From contig OZ116701.1 of assembly GCA_964199315.1 (NCBI GenBank), positions 19,158,001 to 19,222,000 on the forward strand: a stretch of 64,000 nucleotides of DNA, given 5' to 3'. Below the pieces are notes generated by a model that was not told the DNA's origin, searched no databases, and saw only the letters and a list, made by a program, of their open reading frames with translations. The stretch is from Orbicella franksi. Its lineage: Eukaryota. Shown here in pieces: positions 5,241 through 50,800 of this stretch (position 1 is the first letter of the stretch; the number at the start of each line of letters is the position of its first letter). Both the position numbers and the translations under genes were made by a program.

Positions 5241-8200
5241 ATGGGGATTTTCATAGTGACGCTTGCAGTGTTTTGGATTCTTTTCACCGAATGGTGGGAT
5301 CATGCACGAGGTGAAGACGTTTGTGTTGCTAAGCGGTTTTTCTTAAAGAAAGCTCAAGGTAAGTCAGTTCAAGTGCAATGTTTCTTGTGAATGAAGTACG
5401 ACATGGATTTCTGTTAAAGGTTAAACACGGTTTTAGTTGCTCCAGACGGTTGCAGTTTACGCAGATGAATCAAGCAACCCTAAGAAATCATTGGCCATCG
5501 ATACAGGCCAATAAAATGAGGGAGGATGAAAATTGAAACACAACAGTATTTCAGTTTCGCAAGAACAGAAAACGAAAAAAGGCTGCCTTGCTTTCTTTTT
5601 AGACTCGAAATTGTTTTGGTTTTGCACGTCATTTTTTTTTTTTTTTTTCAACAATTTAACTAACTGCATGATAAAGATACCGTATACCATCTCAAAAACG
5701 CCTTGTAGTCTTTTTTAGATTCTCTATATCAGCATTTTAATTTGCGGTTAGTTTGAACTCATTTCCAAGCGACCTTCGTAAAGTTCCGTTAAAACAATAA
5801 CTTATGGCACCTGCCCTGGTAAGCCTAATTCCTCCCTTCAACAAATGAAATAGCAGAGGGAAGATCTGTAAGTAAATATACAAAGTACGAGAGATGTACA
5901 AAGGTTCGCTTTCTGTTTCGTTGCTCATCGCAACCTCCTTTAGTTTAACAAACCGTTGTACTGCTGCTTCGTTAGTAGCGAGCTGCTTCGATGAATTTAA
6001 GAGCAAATGTCACCAAAAATCGAGCATAATTTAAATCTGGCGGCAGAAGTCGAAAAATCGATTATTCTCTCTTTTCGTCCACAAATAGCCCTTCCAAGGC
6101 AGATGTGAAACGTGATATAGTTTTTTTGAGCTCGAAGCGCTTTCAATTCGAGAAGACGATTTTCCACTCTACGGTCGCCAAAATGGCAACACGGCAAAGG
6201 CTGAAAAGTAAAAACCTAAACTTAATTTGCGTTTGCGTGTAAAGCGGGAGAACCACAATTTATCGATACTTTTCCTTGAAAGACAAAGTATTCAGCTATC
6301 CAGAACAGGTTAGAACTTGACTTGAGCGCCATTCGACAATAAACAAACAAATCTTCAAAAAATCCCTTTGAGTTACCAGGTCAAATTCGTAATTTACGAA
6401 TAAAATTCAGAGATATTTTTCGACATGTGCCGTAACTTCAAATTACTTGAAACTTTGCCTTTTGAATACTTTAATGTTGTTGTAAAACATGTATTAAGAC
6501 CAGTTTGGATTATTCTTCGAGTGTTCTTTGAGGTCCGGCTGAAAAACTCCGATTTTACCTGAAGCATCACGAAAGGTGACTAGCGCGCGTTGTTCTGAGG
6601 GCAAGCGGGTATCTAGGCGTTTAAAGTCCTTGTATTATTAGTTCTTTGTACTGATAAGCAAATTGCTTCCCTGTACTTATAATGTAAGGGTAAAACCGTG
6701 ACTCAATCTCAACGTCAAAGTAAGTGTATTTCTAAATACAGTTTCTCGCTTTCAATGCCAGACATTTGTGAAGAGGTGTCCATCGGATTCCACACCAAGC
6801 TCTCTTGCGATCTCAAATTGCAACAAGAGTCGCATACTTATCACAACTTTGGTTAAGCCTACTTCGTACTATGTACGACTTCCAGAAACTATTATATTTT
6901 GACGATGGTATTTGTCCTCTAATTAGTTAAATGAGAAGTACGTCTTCGCTCTCCACCAGTTGTCGCCAAATCGTTAGTGAACGCGACCCAACTTTAGACA
7001 TTTTCCCAGGGTGGGTTGTTTACTTAAGAGCGACAGTTTATTTCCGAAGTAAAACATGTTTCCAATACAGTAACCGAAGGCGATCAAATTACATAAAAAT
7101 AACGGTTTTGTGTTATCTTTTTTCTTTCTTTCTCTTTTGTCTTGCCTGGAGACGCTGTGCTGATAAATCACGTGATCAGTAAGTACCAGGTCACCTCGGT
7201 GATCGATTGTGCTCACCGTTGCATACGCGAGTCCAGGTGCGTTTCCTTCAACTACGAGGATCACGCTACATCGCTACGACACGTGTGTCAGATCAATGAC
7301 GAGAAAAAGCAAAAGAACTTTGAAAACTTCATTGGCCTGGATGGTTTCAGTTACTATCAGTTTGAGGTAAGTATTCGAGGCGTCAAAATATGCACACCTT
7401 CAAAAATACGTTACTCTAGGATAATGATGCTATAAAATGCATTACAGTGTAGGCGAAAACAGCCTACGTGAAGATGTCTCCTGTTTTCTTTGCTTTACCA
7501 CATGGGTATAACGCCGCACGGGTCCAGATTAGGACCCGGGGCACACTGGTAGGAGGCTGGCGAGCGCTCTCATCACTACGTCACTCCTTAGTACCCAACA
7601 TACCTTGAACAAGGTTGCTGTTTTAATTTATGATAACATTAGCCGGCCACGATCGGAACGGGAGACTCTAGTTTAAATATAACACCGCTGCCTAACTAAG
7701 AGAGTTCTTCATTCCTCCTACCTCGGGTACGATCTACCTGGCATGTCTGACATGGTTGACACAGACATCACTTTTCAAAAATTTTCTGACTTTTCCCTGA
7801 TACAAATGAAATTTCCCTCGCCAAATGAATACAAAATGTCAGATCTAGTAGAGGCTATAGCCACCCTCTGCATTCGTTCATTAAGACTGGTCATTTTTAA
7901 CTAACAAATTTTCCTTCTTTATAAATTTAAAATATCGCTGAGCAAGATATTATATTCTTCTGCGTTGAGATAAGAGTGACCCCAATGTTTCTTTCAGCCT
8001 TCAATGGTATTTTAAAAACCAGCCGTTTTAAACAAAGACAATCGACCAGTAACTGAATCTCTTTTCTATCTTCATTCTCAGCAGCCTTTCGCATGCTGTG
8101 TTGGTTGTCAAAATGGCGGCACTTGTTTGGAGCAGTGTGACGGAAACCGTAAATGTATCTGTACAGAAGGATACACCGGAGTACATTGTGAAAATATTCT

Positions 8201-14496: not shown

Positions 14497-17400
14497 ATGG
14501 GGATTTTCAAAGTGACGCTTGCAGTGTTTTGTATCCTTTTCACCGAACGGTGCGATCATGCACGAGGTGAAGACGTTTGTGTTACTAAGCGGTTTTTCTT
14601 TAAAAAAGCTCAAGGTAAGTCACTTCAAATACAATGTTGCTAGTAAATGAAGTACAACTGGGATATCGGTTAAAAGTTAAACTCGGTTTTTGTTGTTCCT
14701 GGCGGTTTCTTTAAGCAGGAGTTTAATTTTTTTGGTACAATATGAATCAAGCAACACTAAAAATCATTTGCCATTGAAACAGGTCCAATAAACTGACTGA
14801 GAATGAAAGTGTTGCGTCGAAAAAGAACACTTTTTCAGTTTCATAAGAACACGAAACGAAAAACGGCTGCTTTTCTTTCTTCTTAGACTCGAAATTTGGT
14901 TTTGGTTTTGCACGTCAACCTCTTTTCAAGAATTAAACTAACTGCATGGTAGAGATACCGTATACCATCTTGCTAACGGATTGCAGTCGTATAGATTCTC
15001 TATATCAGTATTTTAATTTGCGGTTATAATTTAAACAAACTTCCAAACGACCAAACGACCGCGGGAAAACAATAGCTTATGGCACGTGCCTTGGTAAGCC
15101 TAATATCTCTCTAAACAAATAAAATAGGAGCGGGAAGAGTTGTAAGTAAATTGTAGGAGAAATTTACAAAGGCTCGCTTACTCTTTCATTGCCCATCGCT
15201 ACCTCCTTTCGTTCAACAAACAGTTGTACTGCTATAAAAGGGGTAAAAAACGTTCTCTGGTAAAATTGTTTAAAGTTGTGAGCTTTCAACAGCCAGTCTG
15301 CTGTCTTTGACGGACAAATATGAAATGATAAAATAGACCTAAAAGTTTTTGAATATAACAAGCGAATGGCATATATTAAATAGAATACGTGTGAAAGAAT
15401 GCGAGAATGCTAACATAACGAGCTTTAAGGCGCGAAAAAATTTATGCAAATTAGTCTGACGGTAGATTGAATCTACCGTCAACCAATTAAGACCTGTAAC
15501 ATAAGAACGCAGTTCTCACATTCTCCTGACCAAGAATATAACTGATATAATTAGTTAATGGGATTTTCGGTAACACCTCATGCATTGATAAATTCCCACG
15601 AGCACACGCAGTGTACGTGATAAAACCACAGCGCGAGGATTCTCGTCTAGTTCGCGTGAAAAGTTTTTTTGGAATAGCCGGCCATTCACGCTTTTCTTGC
15701 AATTGAGCCCCTTTCCCTGTTTCAAAGACTAACGTAACATTAAACAAATCACGATAAATTTAAGCAAATACACATCATCAAAGACAGCATAAATTTGTTT
15801 GCGTGCTAAGGGCATTTATTGCACAGTAAAACACCAACAATTCGTGTCGTCATATTGAAATATACCATCGTCCATCAGTCTTGACAGTTCTAATAGGCTA
15901 ATAATACTGAAAGCGAGTTATGGAAAAAATGAAAATTCGTCAATTCATGCTAATCGGCTGGAATTGTTCGCAGTATAACAATGTGTAACAATTGATTGAA
16001 AGTCCCGTGTCTATAGAACAGCAGCAAATTCATTTAATGATGGGCGATTTGGTGGATCGTCAGAGGTTAATTTCTTCGCCACTTTCAGAGAAAGCGCTGT
16101 TGCGGTAGGCAATAAATTTAAAATTTTCAGCGCAATCTTTCCGAAAGAAAAGACATCAGAAACTACACTTTGCTGTCCTTTTCCACTAACAATTTCTGGC
16201 GCGATATGTGGGTAAGACCGCCGGTATTCTTCTTGTGCGGAAGGTGACAAATCCATCAATGGTTTTGGGTTGGCAATGCGTCGCGCTTTCCCAAAATCAA
16301 TAATTACGGGATTCCATTGTTCTCCAGGTTTTTCCAGCACAACGTTGTTTGATTTGATGTCGTTATGAACAACACCGGCTTTGTGCATATGATTGAGAGC
16401 GTCCATTATTTTTTTCAGAATTCCTATCCAAGAAGGCTTGTCAAGTGTCCCCTTTTTGATAACCTTGTGTAATGTTGAACAAGAGTTGTTCTGGCCATGG
16501 AACTGAGTTATCAGTCGCAGCGGCAGTGATTTAGTGATAACTCCAAACAGTAAAGGCAGTCCACGGTGGTCACCGAGCTGGCCAATCATTTGAGCCTCTC
16601 TGAGAACTTCTTGCTTTATCTCATCCTGTGACCTTGACTGCCGAGGCTTAAATTCTTTTACTGCTACCGAAATCCCTCTGTAGTAGGCCAGGTAACACGT
16701 GCCAAAAGATCCACAGCCCAAAAAAATTTCTGATCTCACTACTTCCGAAGGATTTATCTCTTTCAATGGTGCAGATACCCGGGTTCGAGCCTCGTCCGAT
16801 TTCTTGGTTTTGGAGGTTGATCCAAGAACATCTACCACGACCGGGCTTTTCTTTGCTTCACAATGCTTGGCCGGTTTTGGCTCAGCAAAACCTTGCTCTG
16901 GCTCGGGAAGCTGACAGCTCATGGACGGTCGCACTGCTTCGGCAACAACTGCAGGTTTAGCTTCTGACTCGCGAGCAAGCTCAACAGCATTCTTGAGACA
17001 TTTGGCTTTCGCCTTCTTATTCCTCCATCGTTTCTTTGCTTCAATCCGAATGCCTTTCATTTTCTCTCTGTCTACGAGTTTCTTCCGCTTGTTTCTCGCC
17101 ATTCTCCTTGCTTCCAACACCCACAGAAATGAAAGGAGATTGAGACGAGCACGAAATGCAAAATGCGTTCAAAGAGCAGCATACGATCAAATCTTACTCA
17201 GGAGCAAATGCTACAATCATGTTTTCCGGCTCTTATTGATCCTTTGTTCCGGCGTGTGAGAACTATAATCCCTTTCAAAAAGATCGAGGGTCTGCTGTGG
17301 GGTAGTGGGAGTCGACAGTTCTCAAACAAAAAGTTTAGTAAATATAGAAACTGAAGAAATGTGCTGCAAAATTTTCGAGAAAACAAAAACAGCGATCAGG

Positions 17401-20400
17401 AACCCGAAGAATATCATCCAACTAACGTTGCACTACTTTTCACGGCAAAGAGATAAAGAAGTTATTCAGTGCCCCCTCCCCCAATAAAATACTAATTGTC
17501 TGTTCCGAATCATTTGTGTGATTGTGCCAAACTGACAGATGTCATTCCATTTCCCCTACTTGGCAAAGCCCTCTTTTCGCAACACAACATTGTGTATAAT
17601 CGCAGAGCTACATTCAAGATCTGAGTTTTTTCGGGGGCCTTCTTTGGTTAATTTCGCATTTTGGTTTGGAAGTGATGGCCTTAGTGGTATATAAGACACG
17701 CTGTGACCTTTGCCTTTGCTCCTTCAACACAACGGCTGCGCTTCTGCGACACAGACTTGTAAAACACAGCCAAGCGGAAACGGTTTCATATTTGCCCTTT
17801 TACAAAGGCGAAGAAGTCGTACAGCTTCCGCGAACAACCAAGAAAGGACGCAGGTCGGCGACCTATAAAGAATGGATCGGGGGCCTTGTGGATAGCATGA
17901 ATTCCTGTTTACATCCCAAAGCTCCTGGTAAGAGCAATAACAACCCTATAGATAACCTTTGACCAGGCTCTATTTTCGCTTCAATGGTAAACCTTTTCCC
18001 ATGGGAAACGAAAATTAGCGAATTGCGACATAAGAGGACATAAGAGCGATGCTAAAATTGGGCCTGATCGCAGGTTATCCTATAGACGAGATAATAAAAT
18101 CTCTTGCGAAGTAAATCTATGGAAGTGATATTAGATTGAACTATTTGCAGGAATATGGTACTTCCGGTCGAGAAAAAAATACCATCATTGTTTCAATAGT
18201 AGGTACGAGCTCAGGTAATACGTTGAAACGCATTAAAAGTCACCAATTCAAATCGACTCACGAATGAACTCCTCTTTTGGTTTGACCATTTTATTTGAAT
18301 GCATGGGAAGCTTTCAATACTTAATTTAACATACGAATGACATGGGAGACGCACACTTACTAGTCCAAAAGGAGAGCATGATTAAGACTTTTTTCGGGGG
18401 GAGGGGGGGGGGGGGCAGCAGCGAGGTATCAATCCTGCAAGGTTTGGACTCTTATGACTCCTCCTTTACTGGCATTAGGTAAATGGTGTCGCGTGGAAAG
18501 ATATGACGTGCCACAAGAATACTTCCAGGCTATGCTGGCGGATATGCCAAATGCATTCATCAACAGCATACGGGAGAAGAGACATCTACGCCCCCCTATA
18601 TGGAGGGAAACCTCCAAAGTACTGTCGTACAGGGATTATCACATTAGCGATTTGGTTGACGCCCTACAGAAACGGAGCGGCGTAAAACTGCATATAAAAA
18701 AGGCTTACCTGGGAGACGAGGAGATATCTGCATTTACCGAAGAACAAGATGGAAGAACCGCACTTGAAGCAGCCAAAGCAAGGGCACACGAACGTACTGC
18801 GAACAAATTTCCAACGCTTCAAATTCAAATTGTTGTGGGACGTGGTGAAGGAAGGGCTACAAGAGAGTTTGAACTGTTGTGGTGGCCGGAAATGTTCTCG
18901 ACTAACAGGCACGGAAAATTAACACTACGATTTTTTGTGTCGAAAGTAAATTTTTCCTAAAATACGCAATTTCCAGTTACAAATAAACAAGAGGCCATGT
19001 TTATTTCTCGGATATGAGATTGTGAAAAAAGTATAACGTCAAAACACTGTGTAACAAGACGCTACAGATGTTAACTTTATGCAATGACAAAACAATTTGG
19101 TGGAATATTGATGTTTCAGTGGCAGTTCCGAACGAAAATAAAGGAAAAGAAAAAAGCTGTAACTGAGCTGACTACCCGAGAAAGACAGAATAGTTTAAAG
19201 TTAGTTGAAAAGGAAATTATATTCTGCCCTCAGATAACAACAGCTCAAATGAACTGACCACCCAAAAAAGACAGAATAGTTTAAAGTTAGTTGAAAAGGA
19301 AATTATATTCTGCCCTCAGATAACAACAGCTCAAATGAACTGACCACCCAAAAAAGACAGAATAGTTTAAAGTTAGTTGAAAAGGAAATTATATTCTGCC
19401 CTCAGATAACAACAGCTCAAATGAACTGACCACCCAAAAAAGACAGAATAGTTTAAAGTTAGTTGAAAAGGGAATTATATTCTGCCCTCAGATAACAACA
19501 GCTCAAATGAACTGACCACCCAAAAAAGACAGAATAGTTTAAAGTTAGTTGAAAAGGGAATTATATTCTGCCCTCAGATAACAACAGCTCAAATGAACTG
19601 ACCACCCAAAAAAGACAGAATAGTTTAAAGTTAGTTGAAAAGGAAATTAAATCAACAGGAAACAAAAGATAAATTTTGGTGTGAGATAGCAACAGCTCAA
19701 TTTGAACGAACTGCACCGGAGCATTGTCACTGCAAGCTAAACAAACTAAATTTACACGTGGGCCCAATCAAGAATCTGAAGCATAAGGTTTTTCCGATGC
19801 AAGTCCATGTCACTGTATCTCCACGCAAAGCTGTTGATACATGAAGGGCCCCTCTCCAAGAAGTCTCTTGCTGCCATGATAACACCAACTCCACAGCTCC
19901 CAGCACCAATCATCTTCGAATCATTCACTCTTTGATCTGGCATTCCAAATCGTTTGAAGTGGTTGCAGTTTACCCAAAACTTTGTTTGGAGGGTCGCATG
20001 AGATGGATACATAATTGTCAGCAGTTCCAACAAATCTTTGATTGTGGGAAGGGTTGTAAATGGGGGAACATATCTTAGTCCATCATCAAAGTACATTTCC
20101 ATCCTTGACAAATTGACATAAATCAAACCCCAGTGGTTTGGCATATGGACTGGGACTAATATTTGCTGGAGGGTGTTGAAATTCTTCAATTCAGATGCTG
20201 TTCTCGCCATCCACTTTTTCTTGAAATTGATGTCGGGTGCTTTCATCCAGTCATAAAATTCTGAAGGAAAGTAAAGTGTATTGTCATTTCCGTTCATTCT
20301 TGCTTCTTCTAAGTACTTTCCTATGGAAATGTCTATTACAAAACTGTCAATATACCTTTCCAATGCAAGATCTGCAAATGAAGTAACGTCAATACTTTTC

Positions 20401-23400
20401 TTTCCAAACCTAAGGATTATATTAGTGGCTGGTTGGTGCCAAAGGGCTTCCTGAATCCTCACTAAATCTGGTGATGAGCACCTCAACTGGTTGAGCCAAT
20501 TTGCCTCAGAACACACCTTATGTCTAGTATTTGCTATGGTGCAAAACTGTTTCAAAACTGATAATCGACGTTCGGAGAACTGTCCAATACCCACTATGTT
20601 GATACCAGATGGATGGTTTCCCTTATTCGTTTCATCATCAAGAAGCTTTTCAGCTTCCTTGACAACATTTTCACAAGGGCGCATATTCAATGTGAAAGGA
20701 TCAGAAATTGTTGTAGCATCACGAACTGGATGAAGACCAGAGGACGGTTTACTTGATATAGGTGGTATTAGGTTGAATAGTGCAGCCACTTCCGCTCTTG
20801 TGGTGGCTTCATCCATAGAGACACGTAAGGCAGCCTGGTTTGATCCATCAAGTTGCCCTCCTTCAGTGATGGGAGAAAAACAAGAACTTCCACTGACAAG
20901 CGATTCTGCTGACATATCATCGATGGTGTCTTCACAAGTCACCTGCTCAGGTGTTTGGTGACTCTGAAACTCTGGAACAGTATTTTGAGGGACATCATTC
21001 TGCAAGGGAGCACATAAATCGGCCTCTATGTTGGAGACATCTTTGGCAAGACCCTGTGGTGAAGATGTTACATCCTCAATTTTGCAGTCATCAGAGTCCT
21101 CATGCATTTCTTGTTTGGGCTTTGGTGAACTTTGACTTTGGCAATTTTGCATCACACTTGCAGGTATATCATCTCGTTGGTCATTGCCCAAATTAGCGGG
21201 GAACAGGCTTGCAGGAACATCATTTAGCAAGTGAGTGTTGAGAGGGGGTCTTGGTTTACAAAGATTCTCTTTTACACCCTCTCTGATAGATGATTGCTCC
21301 GTATTATTCAGTACATGATTGGCGTATTGTACTTCCCAATAATCATGATCATACTCCAGTAGTCTTGACAAATCTTCATCGCTAACTTTGGTACCATGAT
21401 CAACAGTGTATGTGTATACCAGAAAGTCATTTCCAAACATTTGGCTAAATAAGTCACAAACCATCGTTATCCAGTTTCTTTTCTCCTTTGTCCATGATTT
21501 CATGTCAATGCTTTTCCAGCCACATCCACGGTAAAAAAACTTCTTCTTGCCTAAGGAGGGACACACAATATAAAATCACACTCAGTAAGTAAATTTGGTT
21601 AGCAAAACAACGAACTTCAGTCATGCAGCAAACGCGAATCAGCTGCATATAGCAATGGAGTATAGGACACCATCTCTGCATGAAACAAATTATAATTTTT
21701 CTTCCTTCTTTTTATGCAATTCTGGCTGAACCAGTTTCACACCTGTTCCAGCTCTCTGTGTAAACTTTTCAAATTCAAATACATTTTGATAAAATAAACA
21801 TAAAAAGAACCCTCAACACTAACCTGAAATGATGCATTCCCTTGCTTGTTGGAATGAATACCGCAGTGACAAAAGCATGGTTGTATACCAGTGAGTAAGG
21901 ATTTGGTTCACTGAAAATGAATGGAAATTTTCACTTGCTTGTAGCAATTCCATTTCAACTTGGATGTATTACAACAACAACGAGTAAAGTGGGACTATAA
22001 GGTACATCTACTCGGGTTAAACCGACAAGTCAGAACACAAATATTCAAATTAAAACTCTGCCCCTATGTGACCATTTCAAAAGGCAGAACGTCATGTCTA
22101 ATTTGCAAAAGCTGGAGATAAAGCAGTTTCCATCAACATTAAAATTTGTGTATAAGTGTTATTTTTCAACAATGGAATTTACTGATTGCAAATAGGTGTT
22201 TAGTTGGCTGTCCAGGCATTCTACGACACCATAATGTCAAACATGAATCACTCGTTTCTACAAGGGTAAGGTTAGTTGCAAAAAAAGACTTTTCAATAAG
22301 TTTTTCATGTAGCTGTAAACCATAGCTATAAAGCAATTTTCCATGGTTTCAATAACTAACTTTCTTTTTTTGTTATTTCTACATGTTTAAAATTTATGCA
22401 TACTTACAAGATTGGCCTTGTCCTGAACAATCATGATTTGTGGCCCTGGAATACAACTGCCTGTGTAGCTTGTGTGAAGACTCAAATCCTTGGCCAGAAT
22501 ATTTATATAGGGAACGAAAATGTCGCAACAGCATTGCACTGGGTCCACGACAAGATGTCCGTAGTCCCCTATGCCAAGGTGATGGCCAAATAATTTCTTT
22601 AACAGAAATCCCCACTCTTTGCACTGAAACAAAGACCATGAATAAATGCAAAGTCATCTTCCAATATGCTAAGACAATGGTTGAATGGGAACTTTCACAA
22701 CAATTCCTGATTACTACAGTAGCGGCCCTAGGGATAGCAGCACTTGTGCACAAATACTGTAATTTGGTAAATGAAGGACTGTCACTACTACAAAGGCCAG
22801 CAACTCAGTTACAAAAAGAATACAATGTTTTGAAAGTGAAGAGAAGAAACCTAGAACCTCTGTGTTACCTGGCATAATGTTGGATCACATTTTTTGCAAT
22901 GCCTTTTGTCAATGATACATCAACAGTAGCAGCAATGGTTCTTCATGCCATTAATAACTTAAAATTCTAGTTCCAGCATGGGTATTATTTCCTATACAAA
23001 GAAAAATACAATAAATTTGTAACCCCCTTACAAAAACCCCTGTCTTAAAAGCCACAGAGTATTTTGTTACCTTGACATCATGGATGTCTATCAACTGTTC
23101 CTCATGTTGATTAAATACTTTATCACGTATCGTAAGGGCAATGTCTCTCCAATCACAACAGACCTGAAATTAATATTTGGCAGGGTTGTTATTCAGTTGA
23201 AGACCAGAGCCATGCAAATGGTTTTTTTACAGAGGGGCATGCAGGCATACCTGCAGATCTGAAATAAATCATTATTGCTACGATAAGAGATTTGTAGATG
23301 TCTACTTGTACATGTATGTTTAGGTACTTCTCCTACATACATACACACATAAACTTTATTTCACCTTTGATTTACGGAGTAGCCATAAACACTAATATCT

Positions 23401-26400
23401 CCAAGAAGATAAATGTCCTATGCTACTAATTAACTCCCACTCCCTACTATACAGACATGTACATGTTTACAGCTGATCACAATTTAAAATTTAGTTGGCT
23501 GATATAACATTTAAAATCATGGAGATTCAGGAGTATTCTCAAATTGCCAGGTAGGCTATCCCATGCTTTTGTGGCTGAGTATCTATAGGAGTGTAGGTCA
23601 TAGGCAGTAGAAAGCTGCTCAGGAAGACTGAGAATGTTGGTACCTCATAAAGAATAGGGTAAACACATTTTTAAGTAGACTGGACAATTTGAGATATTTA
23701 GACATTTAAAGAGTACAGTTAAAATGAGCTTTTGCTCATGATTGGCCTTAAAAAAAGCTGGCATTTCCACCTTAGAAAACTTGTATAAGTGAAGGCTAAT
23801 TAACATCTGATTTTAGTATTTCAATCAATAACAGAATGGATCAGGCTTGACAAATCAGACTAAAGGGAATGGTGATAATAATTTCAATCCCTTTTTGATG
23901 CTTAAATGGTAACTGAAATCTTAGCAGCATCATGTTCCTTTCCCAAACTGTGACTACTTCTGAGAACAAATTAAAGGAGGTCTTCAGGCTCACATATTGA
24001 TTAGCTTTGCTTAAAATGGCACTCACTGGTCAAAAATTTTAAAACTGCCTGTAACATACAGGGTAGTACAGCTGTATTTGAAATCTGAACTTCAAATGCC
24101 GTTTGTCTCATAATAATAGTTTACCTTCACAAAAAACTGAATTTGAAGCTCAGCTGCATATGTTGAAAAAGTATCATCTCTGGTGTGTTCTGGTAGCATT
24201 TCTTTCTTCGATTTCCTCCTCTTTTTCTGCTTTGGCTCATTAACTGGCACCTGGCCTTGTGCTAACTCCATGTACCTTTCATCTGCTTCTCTTTGCTTTA
24301 GAGCCCAATACTCTTTATGGTTTTCCAAAAACAATTTAAACTCTAAAAGATAAAACCAGTGCAGATTTAACTTTAAGAAATTTGGCTGTCATAGCAAAAT
24401 GTACACTTTACAAGGGCTTTTTGTTTGTACTATAGACAACTTTTCTGAAAATTCTTTTACAGTAATCTGATTTTTACTCCTTTCGAAAAATTGTCTCTTC
24501 AGGGGTAGGTAACACATATGGATGTATCTTCTGACCAGAACCACAAAGTACACACCACAGTTTTACACATCTTGTGTATAACTTTCCATGTCAAACTGCA
24601 CAACAATAAAGAATTACAACTAAAAGCTAAAGTTTGTTTGCAAGATTAGTACCTTTTGTGTCCTCTAAGTTGACTGTTTCTTGTCCTGAGCCAAGATCAC
24701 GTACAAATGTACCTTTTTGGAGTATCTCATTTATGAACTAGAAAAGGTGAAAATAAGTACTATTAGCTACTTTTACTTTCTATACCAGAACCAATCAAGG
24801 ATTATAGGACTGCATTTGACCCATCAAGTTGTTCTCCAACCAAGACAAAAAAAATTATTTTTCACAGTACAAAAATTTATACACTGTAATATGGTACATT
24901 AGAACTTGATTCATTGTCAGTTTCCAAGTAAAAAGTCAAGACCTACCACAATACGCTCTTCGAAGAAGGTAACATAGCCTAAGATCACTTGTTCTGATGA
25001 ACCACGGTTTTCCTGGAAGTATTTTTTCACTTTTTCAAGGGGTAGTGATCTTTCAACAATTTCCTCAAAATTTCTCAAAATTGCTCTTTCAGTAGATCCT
25101 GTGACAAAAACAAATAAAGGTTTATGAGCTGATTTACATTAAGAACAATATTATTTTGTTATTATGAGAATCCTTTGTCATAACAAAATTGTAATAGTGC
25201 ACACTGGAAATAGGTTACTTAATTCATGTAGACAGCCAGTGAGGCAGTCAATACAGAGACTGTCAATGACTGTTGGTTCAGCTGACAAGAATGCCAAGAA
25301 AAAAAACCTTTAAGATTACTGTACCAATTATTATGCCCTATGGACATTCCTATTTATATTGTATCTTGTTCTGAACTATACCTGAGAATGAGGCCACATG
25401 TATGTTTGCTCTTTCTATAGATGTTTGTTGTCCTTTCCTTTCTTTGACAGTGACACGGGGAAACCCTCTGCAGTTTTCAGGCCCATAATTAGATAAAGCT
25501 TCATTTAACTTGTCGAGGCTTCCAATACGATGGGCAAACAAGCCTAGGGACCCCAAAAGCTGTTCACAGTTCCTCATTTCACAATGCAGAGAACACAAAT
25601 TGACATTACACAAATCTTCCTCAAGAAGAAAGTTGAGGTCTTCTCGAAGACCAGAACCTCTGGAAGATAACAAAAGGGAGGTTGGACCGGTACTTTTTTT
25701 AAGCCTGTGATTGAGCAGTTCATTAGATCTTGTAGAGTGCAATGTATACCAGTGACACATTATATTGAAGGCAACAGAAAAAAAGTATAAATGGTATAAT
25801 AAACACAGCTACTGTAGTTAACTAGTTTGCTATACTTACAAGAGTCTTATAGGATGTTTATGAATTGAACCAAGCCGATAAAACAGATTAAACCAAAGCA
25901 ACACATACCATGCTCTTGGCAGTAAAACAATATTTTAACACACACTGTGCATACCATGTTGCAAATGTGGCCCAGGTTAAGGATGTGTAGAATTAAATAC
26001 ACATATAGTACATGCAGGTACCTCAAAAGTTAACACACCCTCAGAGTCTGGTTATATCAAACTTAAGTAGCTTGTCATGGAAATACTAATTTTAAAGGAT
26101 CTTCAGGATACAGAATTTGGCTGTAACAAGAATGCCTTCTGGAATGTAAGCTTCAGGAATGTACATAAAATAAGCTTTCCAAGTTGGACACATTATTTTG
26201 GCTCATGAAACAGTGATGGTTTTCACCTTGAGATATCAGATATTACTTTTTGTTATGGCCTGTAATGTAAGAAAATATTGGGGAGTATAACGTACAAAAA
26301 AGAACCTTGTGTTCATAGATATGTAGCTAGGCCAAACTATATAGTCATGTAACATTGTTCCAGCTATACATGTGCATAATGATAATTATTATAAGTGCTG

Positions 26401-29400
26401 GAATTTGGTCAATTCAGGGCCTATCCTTTATGTGGGTGAGTTGAACTTGTAATAATTGTGCTTTTAGTTACCTTCCAATGTTAGCTTTTGATCTTAAGCA
26501 ATCTAAACATGCCTCATCGGGATCAGCTCCATGTGATGTACAAGCCTTTCATAAATAAACAGCAAAAGATTTCAAGTTCTAAATATCACACAATATTACA
26601 ATTGGACATAGCTAGATTTATTCACTTACATCTGAATTGTAAGCCAGCAATTAGTCTATATGACATCAATATGAATGGCAGAAGTCAATAATTGTTATAT
26701 TCAATACAATAACTAGGATATGCATACTGTATTTAGAGATATTGTTTACCCTAATAGCATCGCAATAGGCACAACATTCAACATTGTAGCCTTTTCCACC
26801 GAGAGTGAAGTCCTCATCATTTTTCTTATTCAGAAGAAGCAACAGGGCTTTGTAGTCCAGAGTTACTGTAAAAAATTTGTACTTGAGGTGTTAGGGACAC
26901 TTGTACTGATAGCAAAGTATAATACAGTGAGCCCCAGCTCACTTAACACCTCTCACACATAAATGCACAAACATCATACAGAAAAATCAATGTGTTCACC
27001 ACTCTGATCAAAGGAGAGCTTGGAACAGAAGGTCCAAGTTCATTTTGTTTGCATTCAAGATACACATCTAACGGAGTAATCAAAGAATTTTGTAATACCT
27101 GTGAACTTGATTTTGTACTTTCTGCCATCCACTACAATGCCATGTTTTTTAATGCAGTTCTTCTGGGAATTTAGATTTCTCAGGAGCTGCTTTAAATTGT
27201 CTCTAATTTGGAAGTAGAAAAACACATAATAAGTGTACTCAACAACTAGGTTGTCTGCAATGCAATTGCTCACAATACAGAGTCAATAACATTCACTTGA
27301 AATTAAAAAAAATAAGATTGTCAGCATGCAGAAGGCCGACGGGACACCATATTTACTCAAAAAGTGTGCTCCTCCCAGATACGCTACATTAAACAGCCCA
27401 CAAAATTTAACAAGTGCTACAGGGATTTTTCAAGTTTTCAAATGCCCCACATGACTACAGCACAGACCTAGAAGGGTTTACATGCAAATTTACGTGGTGC
27501 TGACATTGACCCAGGCCTTTGAATTCCACAGGAGAATAACACTGACATTAATTGAAAAGGTAATTTAACTTATTTTCTTTATTTCAGTTAAGCACTTAAT
27601 TATTATGACGTGTATGCACTGACCTTTTCTCTTTACAGTTTGCTATAGCAAGTGGGTAGATGGACAGTACACTCTCTGAACTCTTGTTTGCAAAGCCAAT
27701 GGGAGCTACACCCACAGCTACCTGATCTCTGCCTTTTGAACAAAAATATAGGATAAATAATATTTTGCTCCCACATATATAGCTTCTTCAGAATCATAAC
27801 ATATATCAATTCAGTGCCTTAGAGAAAACCTGGCACTGATATATAATATACTTCTGTAAAGATTTTTCTGTATACATAATCCAAACAATGACCATTTGAG
27901 CAATCAATAGTAAAGACAGCTATATCCAGCTCGAAAGCACTGCAGATTACAGATGTCAGGTCTGAATGTCTAAGACAGAAGTCGACAGGCCATTACTGTA
28001 TTTATTTGAATAACTTCCCACTCTGAAAGCCCAAAAATTATGAATTAGCCCCCACACCCACTGACTCCCAACATTGAAGGGGCAGCACCGGTGAATTCAC
28101 TCATTGCCATTATGGATTATGCCATTATTATGCCATTATGCCATTATTATGTGGATGAGATAAAAAAAGTGGATAAGATAGAAAAAGATATAAAAATCGA
28201 GTGAGAAATGTGAACCTGACTGACAATTGCTCAGATTTTTGACCCAGTCAATGGACTTTTATATTGCTTATGCTTTGTTCGTGTTAGCTATTGCACTTTT
28301 TTCCATTATTTTGAAGCAAAATGAACTTGTTGCCCTTTATTTTGTTATTATCCAAAAATTAATGTCCTTACTAACTAAAAATGTTGAAAAAATAATAAGC
28401 GCCCACCTGAAATAAGTGCCCAGCCTTAAGGTCCCAAGACCAAGGCAGTAATTCTAATAAATATAATAGCTACATGGCAATTAAAGGCAAGCCGCAAAAA
28501 CAATATTTTTCTTAAACTTTGGAGTTCAAGGCCAAACGATTGTTTTGACAGCATTTAATTAACCTGTCAATTGTTGTCACAATGGACAAAGACCAAAACA
28601 ACTTGTACACACCTCCAAGAGGACGGCCATCAAGCTTGATATTAAATTCCATATCCTCAGTGTCATTCGAGAAGAGGCGCTGTTCTCGGATGGCCCACAC
28701 CAGCACTGCACTTAGGTCTACATCACATGCATCAAAATCAGCATTCATCCTGTCAATCTTCAATGTTTTCCTCACAACAGAGAAGATAAGCTTCTTGATG
28801 GCTCTGATCTCATTTTTCGTGAGCAGCACAGGTGTATCATCAGATTTCTTAACAAGATGGATATAATTGTTAAAAAACAAAAATTTAAACTATAGCATAA
28901 GTTATCCTACTGTACTAATGAAATTCGACGGACACACTAAGTCTTGCTTGAAACTGGCAGGCAAATTCTCCTGTACAAATTAATGTCAATGATTGAAATG
29001 GAAATCTTCAAACATGCTCTTTTCATCTTAAAATACAAAACTTACAAACTTACAAAACTCAAACAACTGCAGTGAAACTCTATTATTCAATAACCTTGAG
29101 CAGCAAACTGTACTATGTGTTTGAGTGTGTACTTGTTTAAAAACAAACCAACTAGGCCGCATGACATAATGATTTTGTAAGAGGGAACAGGGCGGGGATG
29201 ACTAATTACAAAATCTCATGTTTCAAAAGGGGTTGGGAGGCTTATTAGAGAAGGGGAGCTTATTACAAAAACCAACTTTCAAACAGGGGGCTTATTAAAA
29301 CCAGGGGTTGTTGACAGAGATCGGGGCTTAATAGAACTTTTACATGTACTACTTCCTTATATATACATGTACGAGGGCTGTTCTGCAATAATATGTAATT

Positions 29401-32400
29401 AAATTTTTTTTTAAAAAAAGTGATAAAAACGATGTACAGGTGATCATTCACAATCATCAAATATTCCTCAGTAATTTATATCGTCACCTTAAGTTAATTG
29501 ATTTAATTAAGAAAAGAAATAAAATTAAGTAAGAATGTATACTCACTCCACTCTTTCCAAGCTGCGTCAAATTTAGCAATGTCTGCCACGCCGAGTCAGG
29601 AAGCCTTGACTGAAGCTTAAAAAACAAAAGCGCCCAATCTGGAACTCTCATGGATTTCATAATTCGCCCATAGGTCGACGATGATAAGAGATCAGATAAG
29701 CCTTTCTTGGGACCCTTGGCATCCAAGACCATATCCACGACCTCGGAAATTGTATCTCTCACTTGCTCTTTCTCGTTTTCATTTCCGAAGATAAACCCGT
29801 TCCCCAACACAGAAGATACTGACTCACGATACTTCTCACTGACGTCGTTGAGGGAAGCCATCACCTGACTGCATTGCTTTGCTATTTGCCTCTTTTTCGT
29901 CGTCGATCCTAGTGGACTGCTTTTAATTTCTTCAATTGAACTGCTGCTTGTCGATGGGGATGTTGGCGATGATCGACCCGAACAAGTCAGCGATTTCGTA
30001 GACTCTGGAGAAGATATTGATAGCGAGATGGAATCACCCAGAGTTTTTTCTTGTACTTGAGACTGAAGATTTCTTATCTCGGCTTGGAGTGCGTCCATCT
30101 CAGCCTTGAGCGACTCGATTTGGATGTTGCTCTCGAGTTGATCGAGGTAAACCATTTTCCCGCCAGAATCAACTTTGCTCGGCGGCGTCAATGGCTCCAA
30201 ATCAAGGGTGATAGAATTTATAATTCTTGCGACCGACTGGAAGGAGGGCGAACTGATCAGACCATCAGCTGGAATTTCCCTCTGTCTTAACAGACCAGCA
30301 CATAGGCCAAAAGACGAAGCCACGCATAAATTTCTTGGCTGTCTGTTCCATCTCGATAAATTGGCGGGCTCGAGTTCGCGCGAAGCGATTACTTTGACTT
30401 CATCGGGAAAAATCTTAAATACGCCATTCTTTAAAAAGTCAACTGGTCTCGTTCCCCCACATAGTTCTTTCGTCAAAACATACCAATTCTTGTGCGGGTC
30501 AAGGAACGCGCTTGTGACCCGTGCAAGACGCGTAGAGCTGAACTCCGATGGCACTGGAGGAGATTGTTCTTCCTCCATGCCGGTGCCGTGGATGATGTCG
30601 AAATAAAATACATCATTGCTTTGAAACTTAAATTTCCCGCCTGAGTAAAATATTACCACTGCAGTCAACATTTAACTTTTAGACCCCGAGTGGTACCTTC
30701 GTGTTAATGGCGACGTACAACAATGGTAATACGTCACCTTACGCATCTATCGCGCGTTACGTGGTTGAGCGTGACACATTCTTACGAGGCAAAGCGTCGC
30801 GTGGAATTAGTATCGCTTTGCAATCCTTTATTTGCCATTTTGATTCATAATTTGCCTTTTAAAAAACGCTGGGATGTTTCCTCTTGAAAATGTATCGCAT
30901 GTATACAATCATGCTAACTGATGAGCAATATCCTTCGTATAGTACAGACCATGACAGATATGACCGGACATTGCTCAGATCGCAAAGAGCTGAACTTCGG
31001 TCGCTTGATTTATAAAAGGTTTTCGGTTTTTGAAAAAGCACCAATCGTCAGTCTCCGCTTTGCACGCGTATTCGCGAGGCTTTTTCTTCCATCCTCGCAC
31101 AGCTGGTCATCTAGTGAGATCTACTTTATCGACCTAATCCAAGAGACTAATTAGTCGGCAAACACCTCTTCACCGTATGTTAAAAGACATCTTATGTCAT
31201 GTAATTACAAAGTTTGAATGGTTACAGATCATCTCCCGAATCCTGTGGTGATTTTTTTCTTCCGATAAAGCTCGTTACACTTTTAGCATTCTTGCATTCT
31301 TTCACACGTATTCTATTTAATATATGCCATTCGCTTGTTATATTCAAAAACTTTTAGGTCTATTTTATCATTTCATTTTTGTCCGTCGAAAAAAGCAGAC
31401 TGGCTGTTGAAAGCTCACAACTTTAAACAATTTTACCAGAGAACGTTTTTTACCTCTTACAATGAATCCTGGTATCACATCTTCAATATTTTTAAGTTGT
31501 ACTGCTGTTTCATTGAATTTAAAGCGTTTTTCAAATCCCCTAGTAAAGAAGTATAAATACTGTCGCTGCACCGAAGCTAAATAAGCAACGAAAAAATGGT
31601 CATCCATGCCCTTAATTTTTTTGTGGAAGGTCCTAAGGTCTATATTTTTGGTCGGGGATCGTTTTTTCAACACCAACAAAAAAGTTAATACGTATATCAA
31701 TCGGCTCAGCTTGTTTTATGTAAATTCATGGTCTTCGCAATGCGATAACATCGTAGCTCTTAGAAAAGCAAAAGAAATCACTGCCCAGAGTCAACATGAA
31801 CACTGACTTGCAACCAAACGCTTCCAACAAGCCGATAACGAATCACAATTTTTCGCAAATAAGGGAAGGCGTTAAAACTCAAAATTAATGTCTTTTTTGT
31901 GTTACCTGGAGACGCTGTGCTGATAAATCACGTGATCACAAAGTACCAGGTCACCTCGGTGATCGATTGTGCTCACCGGTGCATGCGCGAGTCCAGGTGC
32001 GTTTCCTTCAACTTCGAGGATCACGCTACATCGCTAAGACACGTGTGCCAGATCAATGACGAGAAAAAGCAAAAGAACTTTGAAAACTTCATTGGCCTGG
32101 ATGGGTTCAGTTACTATGAGTTTGAGGTAAGTCGTCGAGGCGTCAAAATATGCACACCCTTTAAAAGACGCTACTTTAGGGCAATGATGCTGTAATATGC
32201 ATTACAGTATAGCCGAAAACGTAGCCTCCGTGAAGATGTCCCTCGTTTATGCATAACTCATTATATCACTCTTTTAATAGCTCAGTGGACTTATATGGTA
32301 AAATTTAACAAATCTAGACCATTGTCAATGAAAATATGTCTGTCTTTTACGTTTGACCCCGTCGAAAGTTTGCTTGTCCCTCTAAGCTTCTAGCATTACT

Positions 32401-40995: not shown

Positions 40996-42244
40996 ATTAT
41001 CAATCAAGCAACCCTAAAAATCATTTGCCATTGAGACAGGCCCAATAAGGATGAAAGTGCCGCGTCGAAAAACAACAGTTTTTCACTTTCACCAAGAGCG
41101 CAAAACGAAAAAAAGACTGCCTCGCTTTCTTTTTAGACTCGAAATTGTTTTGGTTTTGCACGTCATCATGCTTTTTTTTTGTTTGTTTTTTTCCGAGAAT
41201 TTAACTAACTGCATGATAGAGATACCGTATACCATCTTACTAACGACTTGCAGTCGTATAGATTCTCTATATATCAGCATTTTAATTTGCGGTTATAGTT
41301 TAAACAGATTTCAAAGGACCTTAATTAAGTCGCGGGAGGACAACAGCTTATGGCACGTGCCTTGGTAAGCCTAAAATCTCCCTAAACAAATAAAATGAGA
41401 GCGGAAAGAGTTCTAAGTAAATGTAAGCGAAATTTACAAAGACTCGCTTACTTTTTCATTGCCCATCATTACCTCCTTTCGTTCAACAAAACATTTGTAC
41501 TGCTGTTTCGTTAGAACCGAGCTGCTTTTTTGAATTTAAGACCGAGTTAACAAGAGGACCAGGCAGGGGTGATACATGCCATCTCTCCTTTTTGGATGAA
41601 ACTTTGCCAGATTGAAGGTACTACCCAACAACTCTAAACGATAAAGTGGGCCGGCTTTGTGATTTTTCCCTTAGGAGTTAGACCACCCCCCCCCCCCTGG
41701 TTTTTTGCCCAAAATCCCAAAAATGTCACTACAATAAGCATTAAATTTAAACATCGCTCCTGCTTTCAGAATACATTGAATTTTGTTGGTATTTAAACAA
41801 ACAAAGATTGGACCTATCTTAGGTCACACCAGGAATTTCAAGTCATTTGAAGTGACAGGTGCCAATCAAGGAATGTTATTTCCTACCCATGTCACGTAAC
41901 ATTTAGCAATAAGGCAAATTAGTTCAAATTCTGACTCAAATATTGCTTGAGTCCAACTTTCTAAATCAAAACTAATTTCATCACAGTTTAGAGTCACCCT
42001 TGGCCTGATAAAATCAAGAATAAAATTTTTGGCATCTGTTAGTGTTTGGTAATAAAAGTTGTTCAAACAACATGACAAGAGGCTAGTTTTAACAAAGAGA
42101 CAAGGGCGAAATCTAAAAATATTAGATATTATAGAATCAGTTTATCAAAGTTATTTCTATGTTAATGTCATTAACAAAGTCTTTGAATATTATATAGGGC
42201 AGTGGAAGCTCAATGAATGCAAAACTCTTTGTAATATCTCGTAA

Positions 42245-47828: not shown

Positions 47829-50800
47829 TTACGAGATATTGCAAAGAGTTTTGCATTCATTGAGCTTCCACTGCCCTATATAATATTCAAAGACTTTGTT
47901 AATGACATTAACATAGAAATAACTTTGATAAACTGATTCTATAATATCTAATATTTTTAGATTTCGCCCTTGTCTCTTTGTTAAAACTAGCCTCTTGTCG
48001 TGTTGTTTGAACAACTTTTATTACCAAAAGCTAACAGATGCCAAAAATTTTATTCTTGATTTTATCAGGCCAAGGGTGACTCTAAACTGTGATGAAATTA
48101 GTTTTGATTTAGAAAGTTGGACTCAAGCAATATTTGAGTCAGAATTTGAACTAATTTGCCTTATTGCTAAATGTTACGTGACATGGGTAGGAAATAACAT
48201 TCCTTGATTGGCACCTGTCACTTCAAATGACTTGAAATTCCTGGTGTGACCTAAGATAGGTCCAATCTTTGTTTGTTTAAATACCAACAAAATTCAATGT
48301 ATTCTGAAAGCAGGAGCGATGTTTAGATTTGATGCTTATTGTAGTGACATTTTTGGGATTTTGGGCAAAAAACCAGGGGGGGGGGGGTGGTCTAACTCCT
48401 AAGGGAAAAATCACAAAGCCGGCCCACTTTATCGTTTAGAGTTGTTGGGTAGTACCTTCAATCTGGCAAAGTTTCATCCAAAAAGGAGAGATGGCATGTA
48501 TCACCCCTTCCTGGTCCTCTGGTAAACTCGGTCTTAAAGTGTTTTTCAAATTCCCCGCAAAAATAGTTTAAATACTGTTGCTGCACCAAAGCTAAACAAG
48601 CGCCAAAACAATTGTCGCCATGTCCTTAATTCCTTTTTTCTGGAAGGTTCACAGATCTATATTTTTGGTCAGGGATCGTTTATTCAACACCTGCAAAAAA
48701 AGTTAATGCGTACATCAATCGGCTCAGTTTGTGTTATTCAAATTCATGGTCTTCACAATGCGATAGCATCGTAGCTCGAAAAGCAAAAGAAATCACAGCC
48801 CAGACTCAACATGTACACTGACTTGCAACCAAACGCTTCCAACAAGCCGATAACGAATCACAATTTTTGCAAAGAAGGGAAGGCGTTAAAACTCAAAATT
48901 AATGTCTTTTTTGTCTCACCGGAAAGATGCTGTGCTGATAAATCACGTGATCGCTAAGCAAGTCAACCAAGTCACCTCGGTGTTCGATTGTGCTCACCGG
49001 TGCATGCGCGAGTCCAGGTGCGTTTCCTTCAACTACGAGGATCACGCTACATCGCTAAGACACGTGTGCCAGATCAATGACAAGAAAAAGCAAAAGAACT
49101 TTGAAAACTTCATTGGCCTGGATGGGTTCAGTTACTATGAGTTTGAGTTAAGTCGTCGAGGCGTCAAAATATGCAAACCCTTCTAAAGACGTTACTCTAC
49201 GGCAATGATGCTATAACATGCATTACAGTGTAGGCGAAAACGTAGCCTCTATAAATATGTCTCTCGTTTATGCATAACTCATATTGTATCACTCTTTTAA
49301 TAGCTCAGTGGACTTATATGGTAAAACTTAACAAATCTAGACCACTGTCAATGAAAATATGTCTTCAAGATTTGACCTTTCGAAAGTTTGCTTGTCCCTT
49401 TAAACTTCAAGCATTACTTCAAAGGCTTCCAAATCGGGAACACAAACCAGATGGAATTGGAATTTGTTGTGTTGGTTATTGCGCGGAGGACGAAAAAGGT
49501 GAGAATCCAAAAGAAAAACCTTCTGGCCAAGGATGAGAACCAACAAAAATCTCAAACCATGCACCGGTATGACGCCTTGCAGGTTAACGATTAGGACCCA
49601 AGCACCCACAGGGTAGGGGGCCGGCGAGTGCTCTCACCACTGCGTCACTCCTTGGTTCCCGACATACCTTGAACAAGCTTGCTGTTTAATTCAAACTATG
49701 TATTATCTAGGATCAGAACGGGAGACCCTCGTTCAAATATAACAACGCTGTTTTACTTCGAGCACACGAGAGCTCATCATTTCTCCTACCTCCAGTAAGG
49801 TCTACCTGGCATGTCTCAGCTGCATATATTTTGAGGAAGCACGAGAATTGACATTAAATTTCTGACGTTTGGGGTTATATCTTAGTAGCACATAATCTTT
49901 AAGTCTACATGTAAGAAAAAAGACAATCGACCGGTTACTGAATCTCTCTTATTTATCTTCATTCTCAGCAGCCTCTCGCATGCGGTGTTGGTTCATGTCA
50001 AAATGGCGACATTTGCGTGGAGCAATGTGACGGAAACCGCAAATGTATCTGTAAAGAGGGGTACACCGGAGCACACTGTGAAAACATTCTCAGTACAACA
50101 GAAACATTACGTAAGAGACACAGCAAAAACCTTTCATTTGTACTCATACTTTCAATGTACATCATATTTTACAGACAATAATTAAATTAACTAGTGTACT
50201 GGCTGCCTGGAACAGCCATGCACAGGGGCTGGTGGAGCCGACAACATGATGGTTTGTGAGTGGATTTAGGACAGGCGCATGTCAGTGACGAAGCCAGTCA
50301 ATATCGCGTTGCATGGTCAATAGAACCTGCACTCCGCAACATACAGCAGGTTAACATCGCTCGATCGTTAACTGTATTGACTCGGAGTCTTGTTAGTAGC
50401 AAGTGCTTTTTAAAACACGTTATATATCTGACAGACGTTACGTTTAATATTTTTTTACAGCTCTCCCTGTGAATGCCGTGTCTTCTTGTAAGGCACTCTA
50501 TGACAAATACGAGTAAGTTCACAGTTAAATTCCGTTTTGACAATTTATACGGAGTCGTTCACCTCTCGATTCACTTCTAACCGTACTTCAGTTCAAGATG
50601 CTAACGTGGCGCTTTGTTTAAAAGCACAGGTATCCAGACAGATTTCTGTGTCTCTTCTTATTTTATAAAAATTACTGTGTAGGAAGAGGGACAATTGTGC
50701 AAACGATTTTACCGAGAAATCCATCGCGCAACTGAAATCAGTTACAGCAGTCTATATTTCTCTCGCATTTTAATCACTTTTGGCCCTTATTATTTAATTT

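Follow-up and report, generated by a model that had tools for sequence, protein, structure and literature searches.

DNA transposases of the CACTA-Mirage-Chapaev-Transib (CMCT) clade, which comprises EnSpm/CACTA, Mirage, Chapaev, Transib, Plavaka, ESTA, Lanisha and RAG1, have in common a string of catalytic and zinc-binding residues, D-D-C(2)C-H(4)H-E; the name and definition of the clade are those of PMC12730594. The subject of this report is a gene in a stretch of 64,000 nucleotides from the coral Orbicella franksi (assembly GCA_964199315.1, contig OZ116701.1, positions 19,158,001 to 19,222,000 of the forward strand), called here the window and numbered from its first nucleotide. The gene joins a transposase with this signature to a protease of peptidase family C48, the Ulp1/SENP type. 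The locus probably represents a DNA transposon of hexacorals, rich in introns and of the cut-and-paste type, in a copy with slight damage; the transposon belongs to the CMCT clade and encodes a transposase-C48 polypeptide of about 1,530 residues.

The closest described systems are found in plants. Proteins that combine Tnp2, the CACTA transposase, with a ULP1 domain are reported to be common in plant CACTA/EnSpm elements (Cactavine-2, -3, -4, -5 and -13, and rice proteins), and the ULP region has been described there as a transduplicated host fragment (PMC2528002). CACTA also carries the C(2)C/H(3-4)H signature, as does the coral family (PMC12730594). Both combine a CMCT-clade transposase with an Ulp1 domain. 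Unlike the plant proteins, the coral family is hosted by animals, has no match to Transposase_21, keeps the protease triad invariant in 35 relatives and has an in-frame fusion confirmed by RNA, and its element appears to carry a protein kinase as well. Other mobile elements that keep a C48 protease are Kaonashi, an Ulp1-bearing VANDAL of the Mutator-like group for which induced hypomethylation and escape from silencing have been reported, and the Cryptons of oomycetes. These belong to unrelated transposase or recombinase classes, and as a rule their protease has its own gene or belongs to an accessory protein instead of forming the transposase C-terminus. Ulp1-like proteases with a self-processing or maturation role occur in adenoviruses and Polinton-type elements.

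An earlier, sequence-only reading of the window had proposed the fusion and knew of no described RAG1-fold transposase carrying its own deSUMOylase, a protease acting on SUMO (small ubiquitin-like modifier). As worded, that claim of novelty overlooks the plant Tnp2 (CACTA)-ULP1 proteins (PMC2528002), which are the decisive precedent because CACTA stands in the same clade as Transib and RAG1. Since such proteins were already published for plants, the novelty is narrower than had been claimed. A nematode entry named for a ULP protease also matches the fold: in AlphaFold DB A0A7E4V0T1, a 971-residue "ULP_PROTEASE domain-containing protein", residues 565-969 match the transposase model, so a similar combination of fold and Ulp1 domain may exist beyond cnidarians and plants. 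Literature searches, with Repbase and Dfam outside their reach, found no animal or cnidarian element of this kind and no description of a Transib or Chapaev element with Ulp1. What is rated here as new is a lineage of hexacorals, so far undescribed, in which the fusion is conserved, spliced and in frame and additional cargo is carried.

The transposase-protease gene and its transcripts

The gene lies on the minus strand from 30578 to 19755 and has 14 exons, every border of which is GT-AG. Joined, the exons give 1,531 codons plus one X without a stop. The model started from stop-free segments in three frames; exon order was taken from tblastx blocks collinear with L001 and L002, two loci of Actinostola sp., a sea anemone, and GT and AG splice sites were then enumerated under phase constraints. 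The phases between the exon with the CAYC motif and the exon with the LHCEMRN motif were incompatible in all three species until a 74-nt micro-exon at 26545-26472 was found. This micro-exon was detected solely through a sensitive three-way comparison with L001 and L002, and its inclusion restores the reading phase between its two neighbours. The features of the gene are as follows.

29547-30578, minus strand: exon 1, start Met at 30578; N-terminal 344 residues with a coiled coil and a Ser-rich region, no recognised domain
28613-28847, minus strand: exon 2, pre-RNase-H region and predicted first catalytic Asp (KLDGRP, D417)
27624-27732, minus strand: exon 3, predicted RNase-H strands 2-3; block conserved in L001 and L002
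27099-27202, minus strand: exon 4, predicted RNase-H helix 1
26750-26865, minus strand: exon 5, with TLDYK, whose D497 is the predicted second catalytic Asp, and CAYC, whose C525 and C528 are the predicted C(2)C zinc ligands
26472-26545, minus strand: exon 6, the micro-exon, with a second Cys/His cluster and a conserved SKANIG motif
25382-25659, minus strand: exon 7, conserved LC[AS]LHxEMRN motif (H582), then helices
24947-25098, minus strand: exon 8, placed by tblastx anchors and junction enumeration
24653-24737, minus strand: exon 9, donor 24653 backed by RNA reads (3)
24125-24342, minus strand: exon 10, helical region with a Lys/Arg-rich stretch resembling a nuclear localisation signal
23071-23163, minus strand: exon 11, donor 23071 backed by RNA reads (3)
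22408-22623, minus strand: exon 12, with the predicted zinc ligands of H(4)H and, in QGFES, the predicted catalytic Glu (E880); carries the sole lesion
22541-22542, minus strand: 1-bp deletion (frameshift) within exon 12, 2 nt in the window where L001 has 3 nt in frame
21824-21910, minus strand: exon 13, C-terminal helix of the transposase core; donor 21824 backed by 4 RNA reads
19755-21550, minus strand: exon 14, in which the transposase finishes (FYRGCGW) and is followed by a low-complexity linker and the C48 protease; stop codon at 19752-19754
about 21323-20484, minus strand: low-complexity linker of about 270 residues within exon 14
19755-20504, minus strand: C48 (Ulp1/SENP-type) catalytic domain with H1406, D1422, Q1473 and C1486

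The sequence-only reading had described a chain of about 15 GT-AG exons joining in phase; the chain holds, and the count is 14. All of its motifs are located in the model. In the transposase these are KLDGR (D417), TLDYK (D497), CAYC (C525 and C528), CSLHCEMR (H582), YGHLVVD (H855) and QGFES (E880), and in the protease NHWGL (H1406), YFDD (D1422), Q1473 and SCGV (C1486). The N-terminus encoded by exon 1 aligns with those of two Oculina proteins (P0159 and P0173), starting at residue 15 of the model, and RNA coverage is present over it.

The transposase-C48 fusion is real at the RNA level and is conserved across stony corals and sea anemones. Spliced poly(A) RNA-seq reads of this coral (X23 and X24, the runs that match the window best), in which joints were listed only at three or more reads and depth along the gene was 1-5x, contain the minus-strand GT-AG joints 21824 to 21550 (n = 4), 23071 to 22623 (n = 3) and 24653 to 24342 (n = 3). 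Each of these is also the top-scoring junction in the splice enumeration. The first links the last transposase exon to the protease exon and is one of two junctions that had been predicted from the letters of the window. The other, 22408 to 21910, is below the three-read threshold in RNA, where depth is about 1x, and has the top enumeration score and the homolog alignments in its favour.

Homologs give the same picture. Single gene models from Actinostola (P0015), Actinia tenebrosa (P0029) and Pocillopora verrucosa (P0157) each contain H(4)H, the Glu and C48, and a 1,437-residue protein of Oculina patagonica (P0173, KAL9963764.1) aligns full-length over model residues 15-1530. Identity to the model is 40% over 942 residues for P0159 and 46% over 678 residues for P0156. 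The whole exon order, including the protease exon, is kept in L001 and L002. A near-intronless Logan contig of 5,040 nt (L003) has an 851-residue open reading frame (ORF) that covers the equivalents of window exons 9-14 with H(4)H, Glu and C48, and removal of one GT-AG segment of 103 nt (2136-2238) merges both of its ORFs into one of about 1,487 residues. Thus the in-frame fusion claimed from the sequence is borne out by splice reads, by gene models of four other species, by L003 and by the exon order of L001 and L002. Together the splice reads, the single L003 ORF and the full-length homologs refute the idea that the protease exon belongs to some unrelated gene further downstream.

The 103-nt segment of L003 sits where the window has the intron from 24947 to 24737, and it looks like an intron retained in a transcript or the one intron of a single-intron copy.

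The only lesion in the whole reading frame is the deletion between 22543 and 22540. The 1-bp loss that had been placed at about 22541-22543 is confirmed by comparison with L001, which has one base more and a single frame. The residue lost is the second His of H(4)H (YGHLxx[DE]H), and the X of the model aligns with a His that is invariant in every homolog. As the frameshift costs the product a zinc ligand and leaves both the catalytic Glu and the protease in another frame, the full protein is impossible from this copy, which is therefore predicted to be non-functional as it stands. The suggestion that the copy is young found no support: no near-identical full copy was recovered, and the best long relatives are 52-72% identical.

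Downstream of the gene, a tandem array at 19075-19738, in which a unit of 86 bp is repeated about 7.7 times with 97% identity among the inner copies, begins 14 bp past the stop codon. It may belong to the 3' untranslated region, because RNA reads extend beyond the mapped stretch at 19752.

Predicted fold and place in the CMCT clade

The transposase is read here as a divergent lineage of the CMCT clade that is, on predicted structure, nearest to RAG1/Transib and unplaced in any named superfamily. D417, D497, C525-x2-C528, H855-x4-(H) and E880 make up the signature of the clade and are conserved in all relatives. This motif string is common to the whole clade, and so it marks the clade and not Transib/RAG1 within it.

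By sequence the transposase stands as an orphan. In Pfam at E<=10, 13 family proteins matched no transposase family, with no RAG1 model and no Transposase_21/Tnp2 among the results, and single exons gave no Pfam match for the transposase part. HMMER searches against the PDB, made with phmmer and with 4- and 34-sequence profiles (single exons, P0015:30-200 and P0159:290-910), found no RAG1, RAG1-like or Transib chain at E<=10 and gave chance matches only. A profile search (alignment A4) of a set of 5.8 billion proteins returned solely anthozoan relatives and no named family. Only hexacoral proteins were recovered from the large protein sets, namely those of Oculina, Pocillopora, Montipora, Desmophyllum, Actinia, Actinostola, Exaiptasia and Nematostella.

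The fold was predicted with AlphaFold2 for residues 1-600 of P0156, using a 34-row alignment that included the window exons. The model has a predicted local distance difference test score (pLDDT) of 75.6; an earlier run on a 4-sequence alignment, with a pLDDT of 50, was discarded. When the model was compared with the PDB by Foldseek, all 49 matches at E<=0.001 were RAG1, the amphioxus protein BbRAGL or HzTransib. The best had E 1.9e-8 and a probability of 1.00 over about 600 columns, and the next match was Hermes at 3.5e-3. VIA-align gave a Z of 16.1 for RAG1 over 406 residues (RAG1 461-1007) and 14.4 for both BbRAGL and HzTransib; the next class, at Z 9.4, consists of integrase cores that match the RNase-H sheet alone. 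The top 8 Swiss-Prot models were all RAG1, followed by a 4-log drop, and by protein language-model (ESM) features RAG1 clusters rank first among the named families. In the model, D85, the equivalent of D417, ends strand 1 (residues 77-85), D165 follows strand 4 and E525 lies within a helix, a predicted placement that is canonical for the RNase-H type. The RAG1/Transib RNase-H fold expected by the sequence-only reading was thus found, at the level of a predicted structure, by Foldseek, VIA-align and the Swiss-Prot comparison alike.

The nearest AlphaFold DB and ESM Atlas neighbours outside the family are unnamed proteins (E down to 1e-13, identity 10-16%). They fall in uncharacterised clusters from Naegleria, Rhizophagus and other Mucoromycota, rotifers, amphioxus and cnidarians, with DUF1280 among them, and are the best structural neighbours of the family.

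The likeness to RAG1, BbRAGL (ProtoRAG) and HzTransib extends to the domain plan, with pre-RNase-H, RNase-H, ZnC2, ZnH2 and C-terminal domains in the regions that gave Z 16.1, 14.4 and 14.4. The order D, D, C(2)C, H, H(4)H, E is also that of RAG1/Transib, and the spacing of 20 from His to Glu is that of H942 and E962 in the established numbering of RAG1. Unlike RAG1/Transib, the coral family has longer D-to-D and D-to-E spacings, an extra Cys/His cluster on a micro-exon, 13 introns and a C48 tail; it is without a RAG2-like partner, ends resembling recombination signal sequences were not found, and HMMER detects no similarity.

These features bear on the proposal, made in the sequence-only reading, that the element is a true member of the Transib superfamily that gained introns and a C48 tail. 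In the PDB nothing apart from RAG1, BbRAGL and HzTransib matches strongly, and these rank at the top. Among named clusters, those of RAG1 match best by language-model features and also by shape, where Transposase_21 is absent from the ESM Atlas top list, and the His-to-Glu spacing is that of RAG1. Nevertheless membership in Transib appears somewhat unlikely. Even the 34-sequence profile gave no HMMER match to the RAG1 families of Pfam or to any RAG1/Transib chain. With no solved CACTA, Mirage or Chapaev structure among its matches, the PDB may fail to tell lineages of the clade apart. The ESM model of a close cnidarian relative fits Transposase_21 clusters as well as RAG1 clusters (template modelling score 0.68 versus 0.65), and no CACAGTG-like ends or 5-bp duplication were found in the searched flanks. 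Of the label RAG1/Transib/Chapaev-type, then, the three-dimensional architecture stands on the predicted model, whereas the motif string as its identifier and a placement in Transib/RAG1 at the level of sequence do not.

The C48 domain and its possible role

The last 249 residues match yeast Ulp1 at E 1.8e-6 in a single-sequence phmmer search. With a 35-sequence family profile the match reaches E 1.3e-17 against Ulp1 and about 1e-13 against SENP1/2, over the whole domain. In Pfam PF02902 (Peptidase_C48) the window copy scores 18-19 bits, under the cut-off of 20.7, and two relatives are above it (P0056 at 27.2 and P0086 at 21.1). Among 35 family members the triad of His, Asp and Cys is invariant and the Gln is at least 90% conserved; the spacing from Gln to Cys is 13 residues versus 6 in Ulp1. 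Judged by sequence, membership in peptidase family C48 is secure, and the profile match together with the invariant triad upholds the Ulp1/SENP tail that had been proposed.

From the N-terminus, the predicted order of domains is an N-terminal region, a DDE core in which the RNase-H fold is interrupted by zinc-binding C(2)C and H(4)H modules, a linker of about 270 residues and C48. Intact copies would excise and integrate by D-D-E chemistry in a RAG1-like, zinc-stabilised core. The flexible linker would allow local action of the C48 domain, and the tethered protease could take SUMO or some other ubiquitin-like modifier off the transposase itself, or off proteins of chromatin, repair or silencing at the site of action. 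Purely by inference, the C48 domain might in this way counter SUMO-dependent silencing.

A sister branch, consisting of P0156 (Oculina LOC144666603, residues about 700-1043), P0155 (Desmophyllum) and P0184, keeps the core and has another C-terminal domain in place of C48. This tail has Cys-box-like and His-box-like motifs, and language-model features suggest a protease of the UCH/USP kind; in P0156 it has no sequence match in Pfam or the PDB. If the USP-like swap is confirmed, it would suggest that the element needs ubiquitin-like deconjugation as such.

The main functional rival to a deconjugating role is self-processing, in which the C48 domain would serve in maturation, cleaving the fusion within the linker, for instance, and freeing the transposase, instead of acting as a deSUMOylase on host proteins. 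A long disordered linker does separate the domains, Ulp1-like proteases are counted among the maturation-type genes of Polintons and of viruses related to them (PMC10175614), and with the longer Gln-to-Cys spacing the specificity may differ from that of Ulp1. Self-processing is nonetheless judged unlikely: the best matches of the domain are Ulp1 and SENP1/2, not viral proteases, and the apparent exchange of C48 for a USP/UCH-like domain in the sister subfamily, which is a lead only, fits ubiquitin-like deconjugation better.

A three-gene module, its copies and its ends

Two further genes accompany the transposase-protease gene in the window.

18454-18960, plus strand: ORF of 168 residues on the strand opposite to the transposase gene and directly downstream of it; tblastn match to L001 at E 3.7e-30, also to L002
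16011-17120, minus strand: protein kinase gene on the same strand as the transposase; Pkinase E 9.5e-29

The counterparts of the 18454-18960 ORF in L001 and L002 have the same relative position and orientation. This ORF may form one gene with another at 17666-17962. Its counterpart at a locus of Actinia (L006) has a weak match to C2orf42_C, and an Atlas search with the 168-residue ORF gave no match. The order and orientation of the module, transposase-protease gene, opposite-strand ORF and kinase, are identical at four loci of three species: the window, L001, L002 and L006. The neighbour genes occupy 16011-18960 in the window, 15003-18963 in L001, 18737-21010 in L002 and 5118-7340 in L006, and the two Actinostola loci are on separate contigs. 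Conserved gene order at these loci suggests that the kinase and the opposite-strand gene probably travel with the transposase-protease gene as one three-gene element of about 15 kb.

The family is present in many copies. Searched with the last exon, 376 cluster representatives match at E<=0.001. At least seven gene models of the family are present in Actinostola, and in Oculina copies at least 90% identical lie on three different chromosome-scale contigs. As far as sequence comparison goes, this favours a mobile family over a host gene.

A single inverted repeat was found to flank the module (15238-15440 and 31253-31458; 176-206 nt, 93-97% identical depending on the span). It was set aside as a candidate for the termini of the element: it is a separate repeat with a third copy at 254-437, it overlaps the last 30 codons of a separate 110-residue ORF (31368-31700, minus strand), and it does not start with CA...TG. 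The arms around the module may be unrelated repeat tails. Termini of the type 5'-CA..TG-3' with target duplications of 2-5 bp would be expected of the CMCT clade, and CACAGTG termini resembling recombination signal sequences with a 5-bp duplication of Transib/RAG1. No CA..TG or heptamer-like (CACAGTG) termini and no inner inverted repeat were found in the searched flanks of the window. Inverted repeats of L001 and L002 and a DNA comparison of L006 with L001 gave no shared termini, and the candidates in L001 were unconvincing.

Near the arms, a 12-nt direct repeat, AGTTGTACTGCT, is present at 15223-15234 and 31495-31506, and RNA reads with loose ends occur at 31275 and 31281. Outside the arms, 15152-15233 matches 41422-41504 and 5885-5965, and 31519-31798 matches 48534-48813. 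The sequences beyond the repeat arms are thus repeats themselves, which places the module in a repeat mosaic.

That the family is instead one of domesticated, immobile host genes, coding for a nuclear protein that derives from a transposase, bears a deSUMOylase domain and is clustered with a kinase, appears quite improbable. In its favour, 13 intron positions and the neighbour genes are conserved between coral and sea anemones, all catalytic motifs are strongly conserved, the gene is expressed at a low level in poly(A) RNA and transposon ends were not found. Against it, the copies are many, dispersed and often broken (the 376 representatives, the seven or more models in one anemone and the three Oculina contigs), the entire module is duplicated at unlinked loci with different flanks, and the window copy is frameshifted.

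Several points weigh against reading the locus as a copy of a transposon with a fused protease. First, no HMMER search ties the transposase to any described family, and for this reason its membership in the clade rests on predicted structure and short motifs. Second, the protein modelled was the relative P0156, 46% identical to the window core, and not the window protein. Third, neither the window flanks nor L001 and L002 yielded a terminal inverted repeat or target-site duplication attributable to the element. Fourth, RNA depth is low (1-5x), and in view of several fixed differences from the window the reads may derive from another allele, another colony or a near copy. Fifth, the RefSeq isoforms X1 (P0175) and X2 (P0159) of Oculina LOC144663391 stop before the protease, which implies that not every transcript is a fusion and that a protease-less product may also be made. 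Finally, the substrate of the protease and the activity in transposition are predictions from sequence and model.

Both Oculina isoforms end shortly past the start of the homolog of the last exon, and P0173, a GenBank model for a cluster-mate at 90% identity on the same chromosome-scale contig, includes the protease. The isoforms may reflect alternative 3' ends that yield transposase-only products.

A fuller account of the transposon reading can be offered tentatively, as a possibility on the doubtful side. The family would be an undescribed hexacoral lineage of the CMCT clade, nearest to RAG1/Transib, with an element of about 15 kb and three genes including the kinase. It would have recruited a modifier protease at least twice, as C48 in the majority of copies and as the USP-like domain of P0156 and P0155, and would strip SUMO or ubiquitin at the site of transposition, evading SUMO-dependent heterochromatin silencing or steering repair.

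The significance of the family is tempered by the CACTA Tnp2-ULP1 fusions already known in plants, which are relatives within the clade. If intact copies are active, it would represent an animal transposon in which a RAG1-fold transposase is covalently linked to an apparently functional deSUMOylase-type enzyme, and it would provide a natural system for how SUMO and ubiquitin-like marks control DNA transposition and transposon silencing. As a deeply divergent structural relative, by its predicted fold, of RAG1/Transib in cnidarians, the family also bears on the spread of the RAG1 architecture among eukaryotic transposases.

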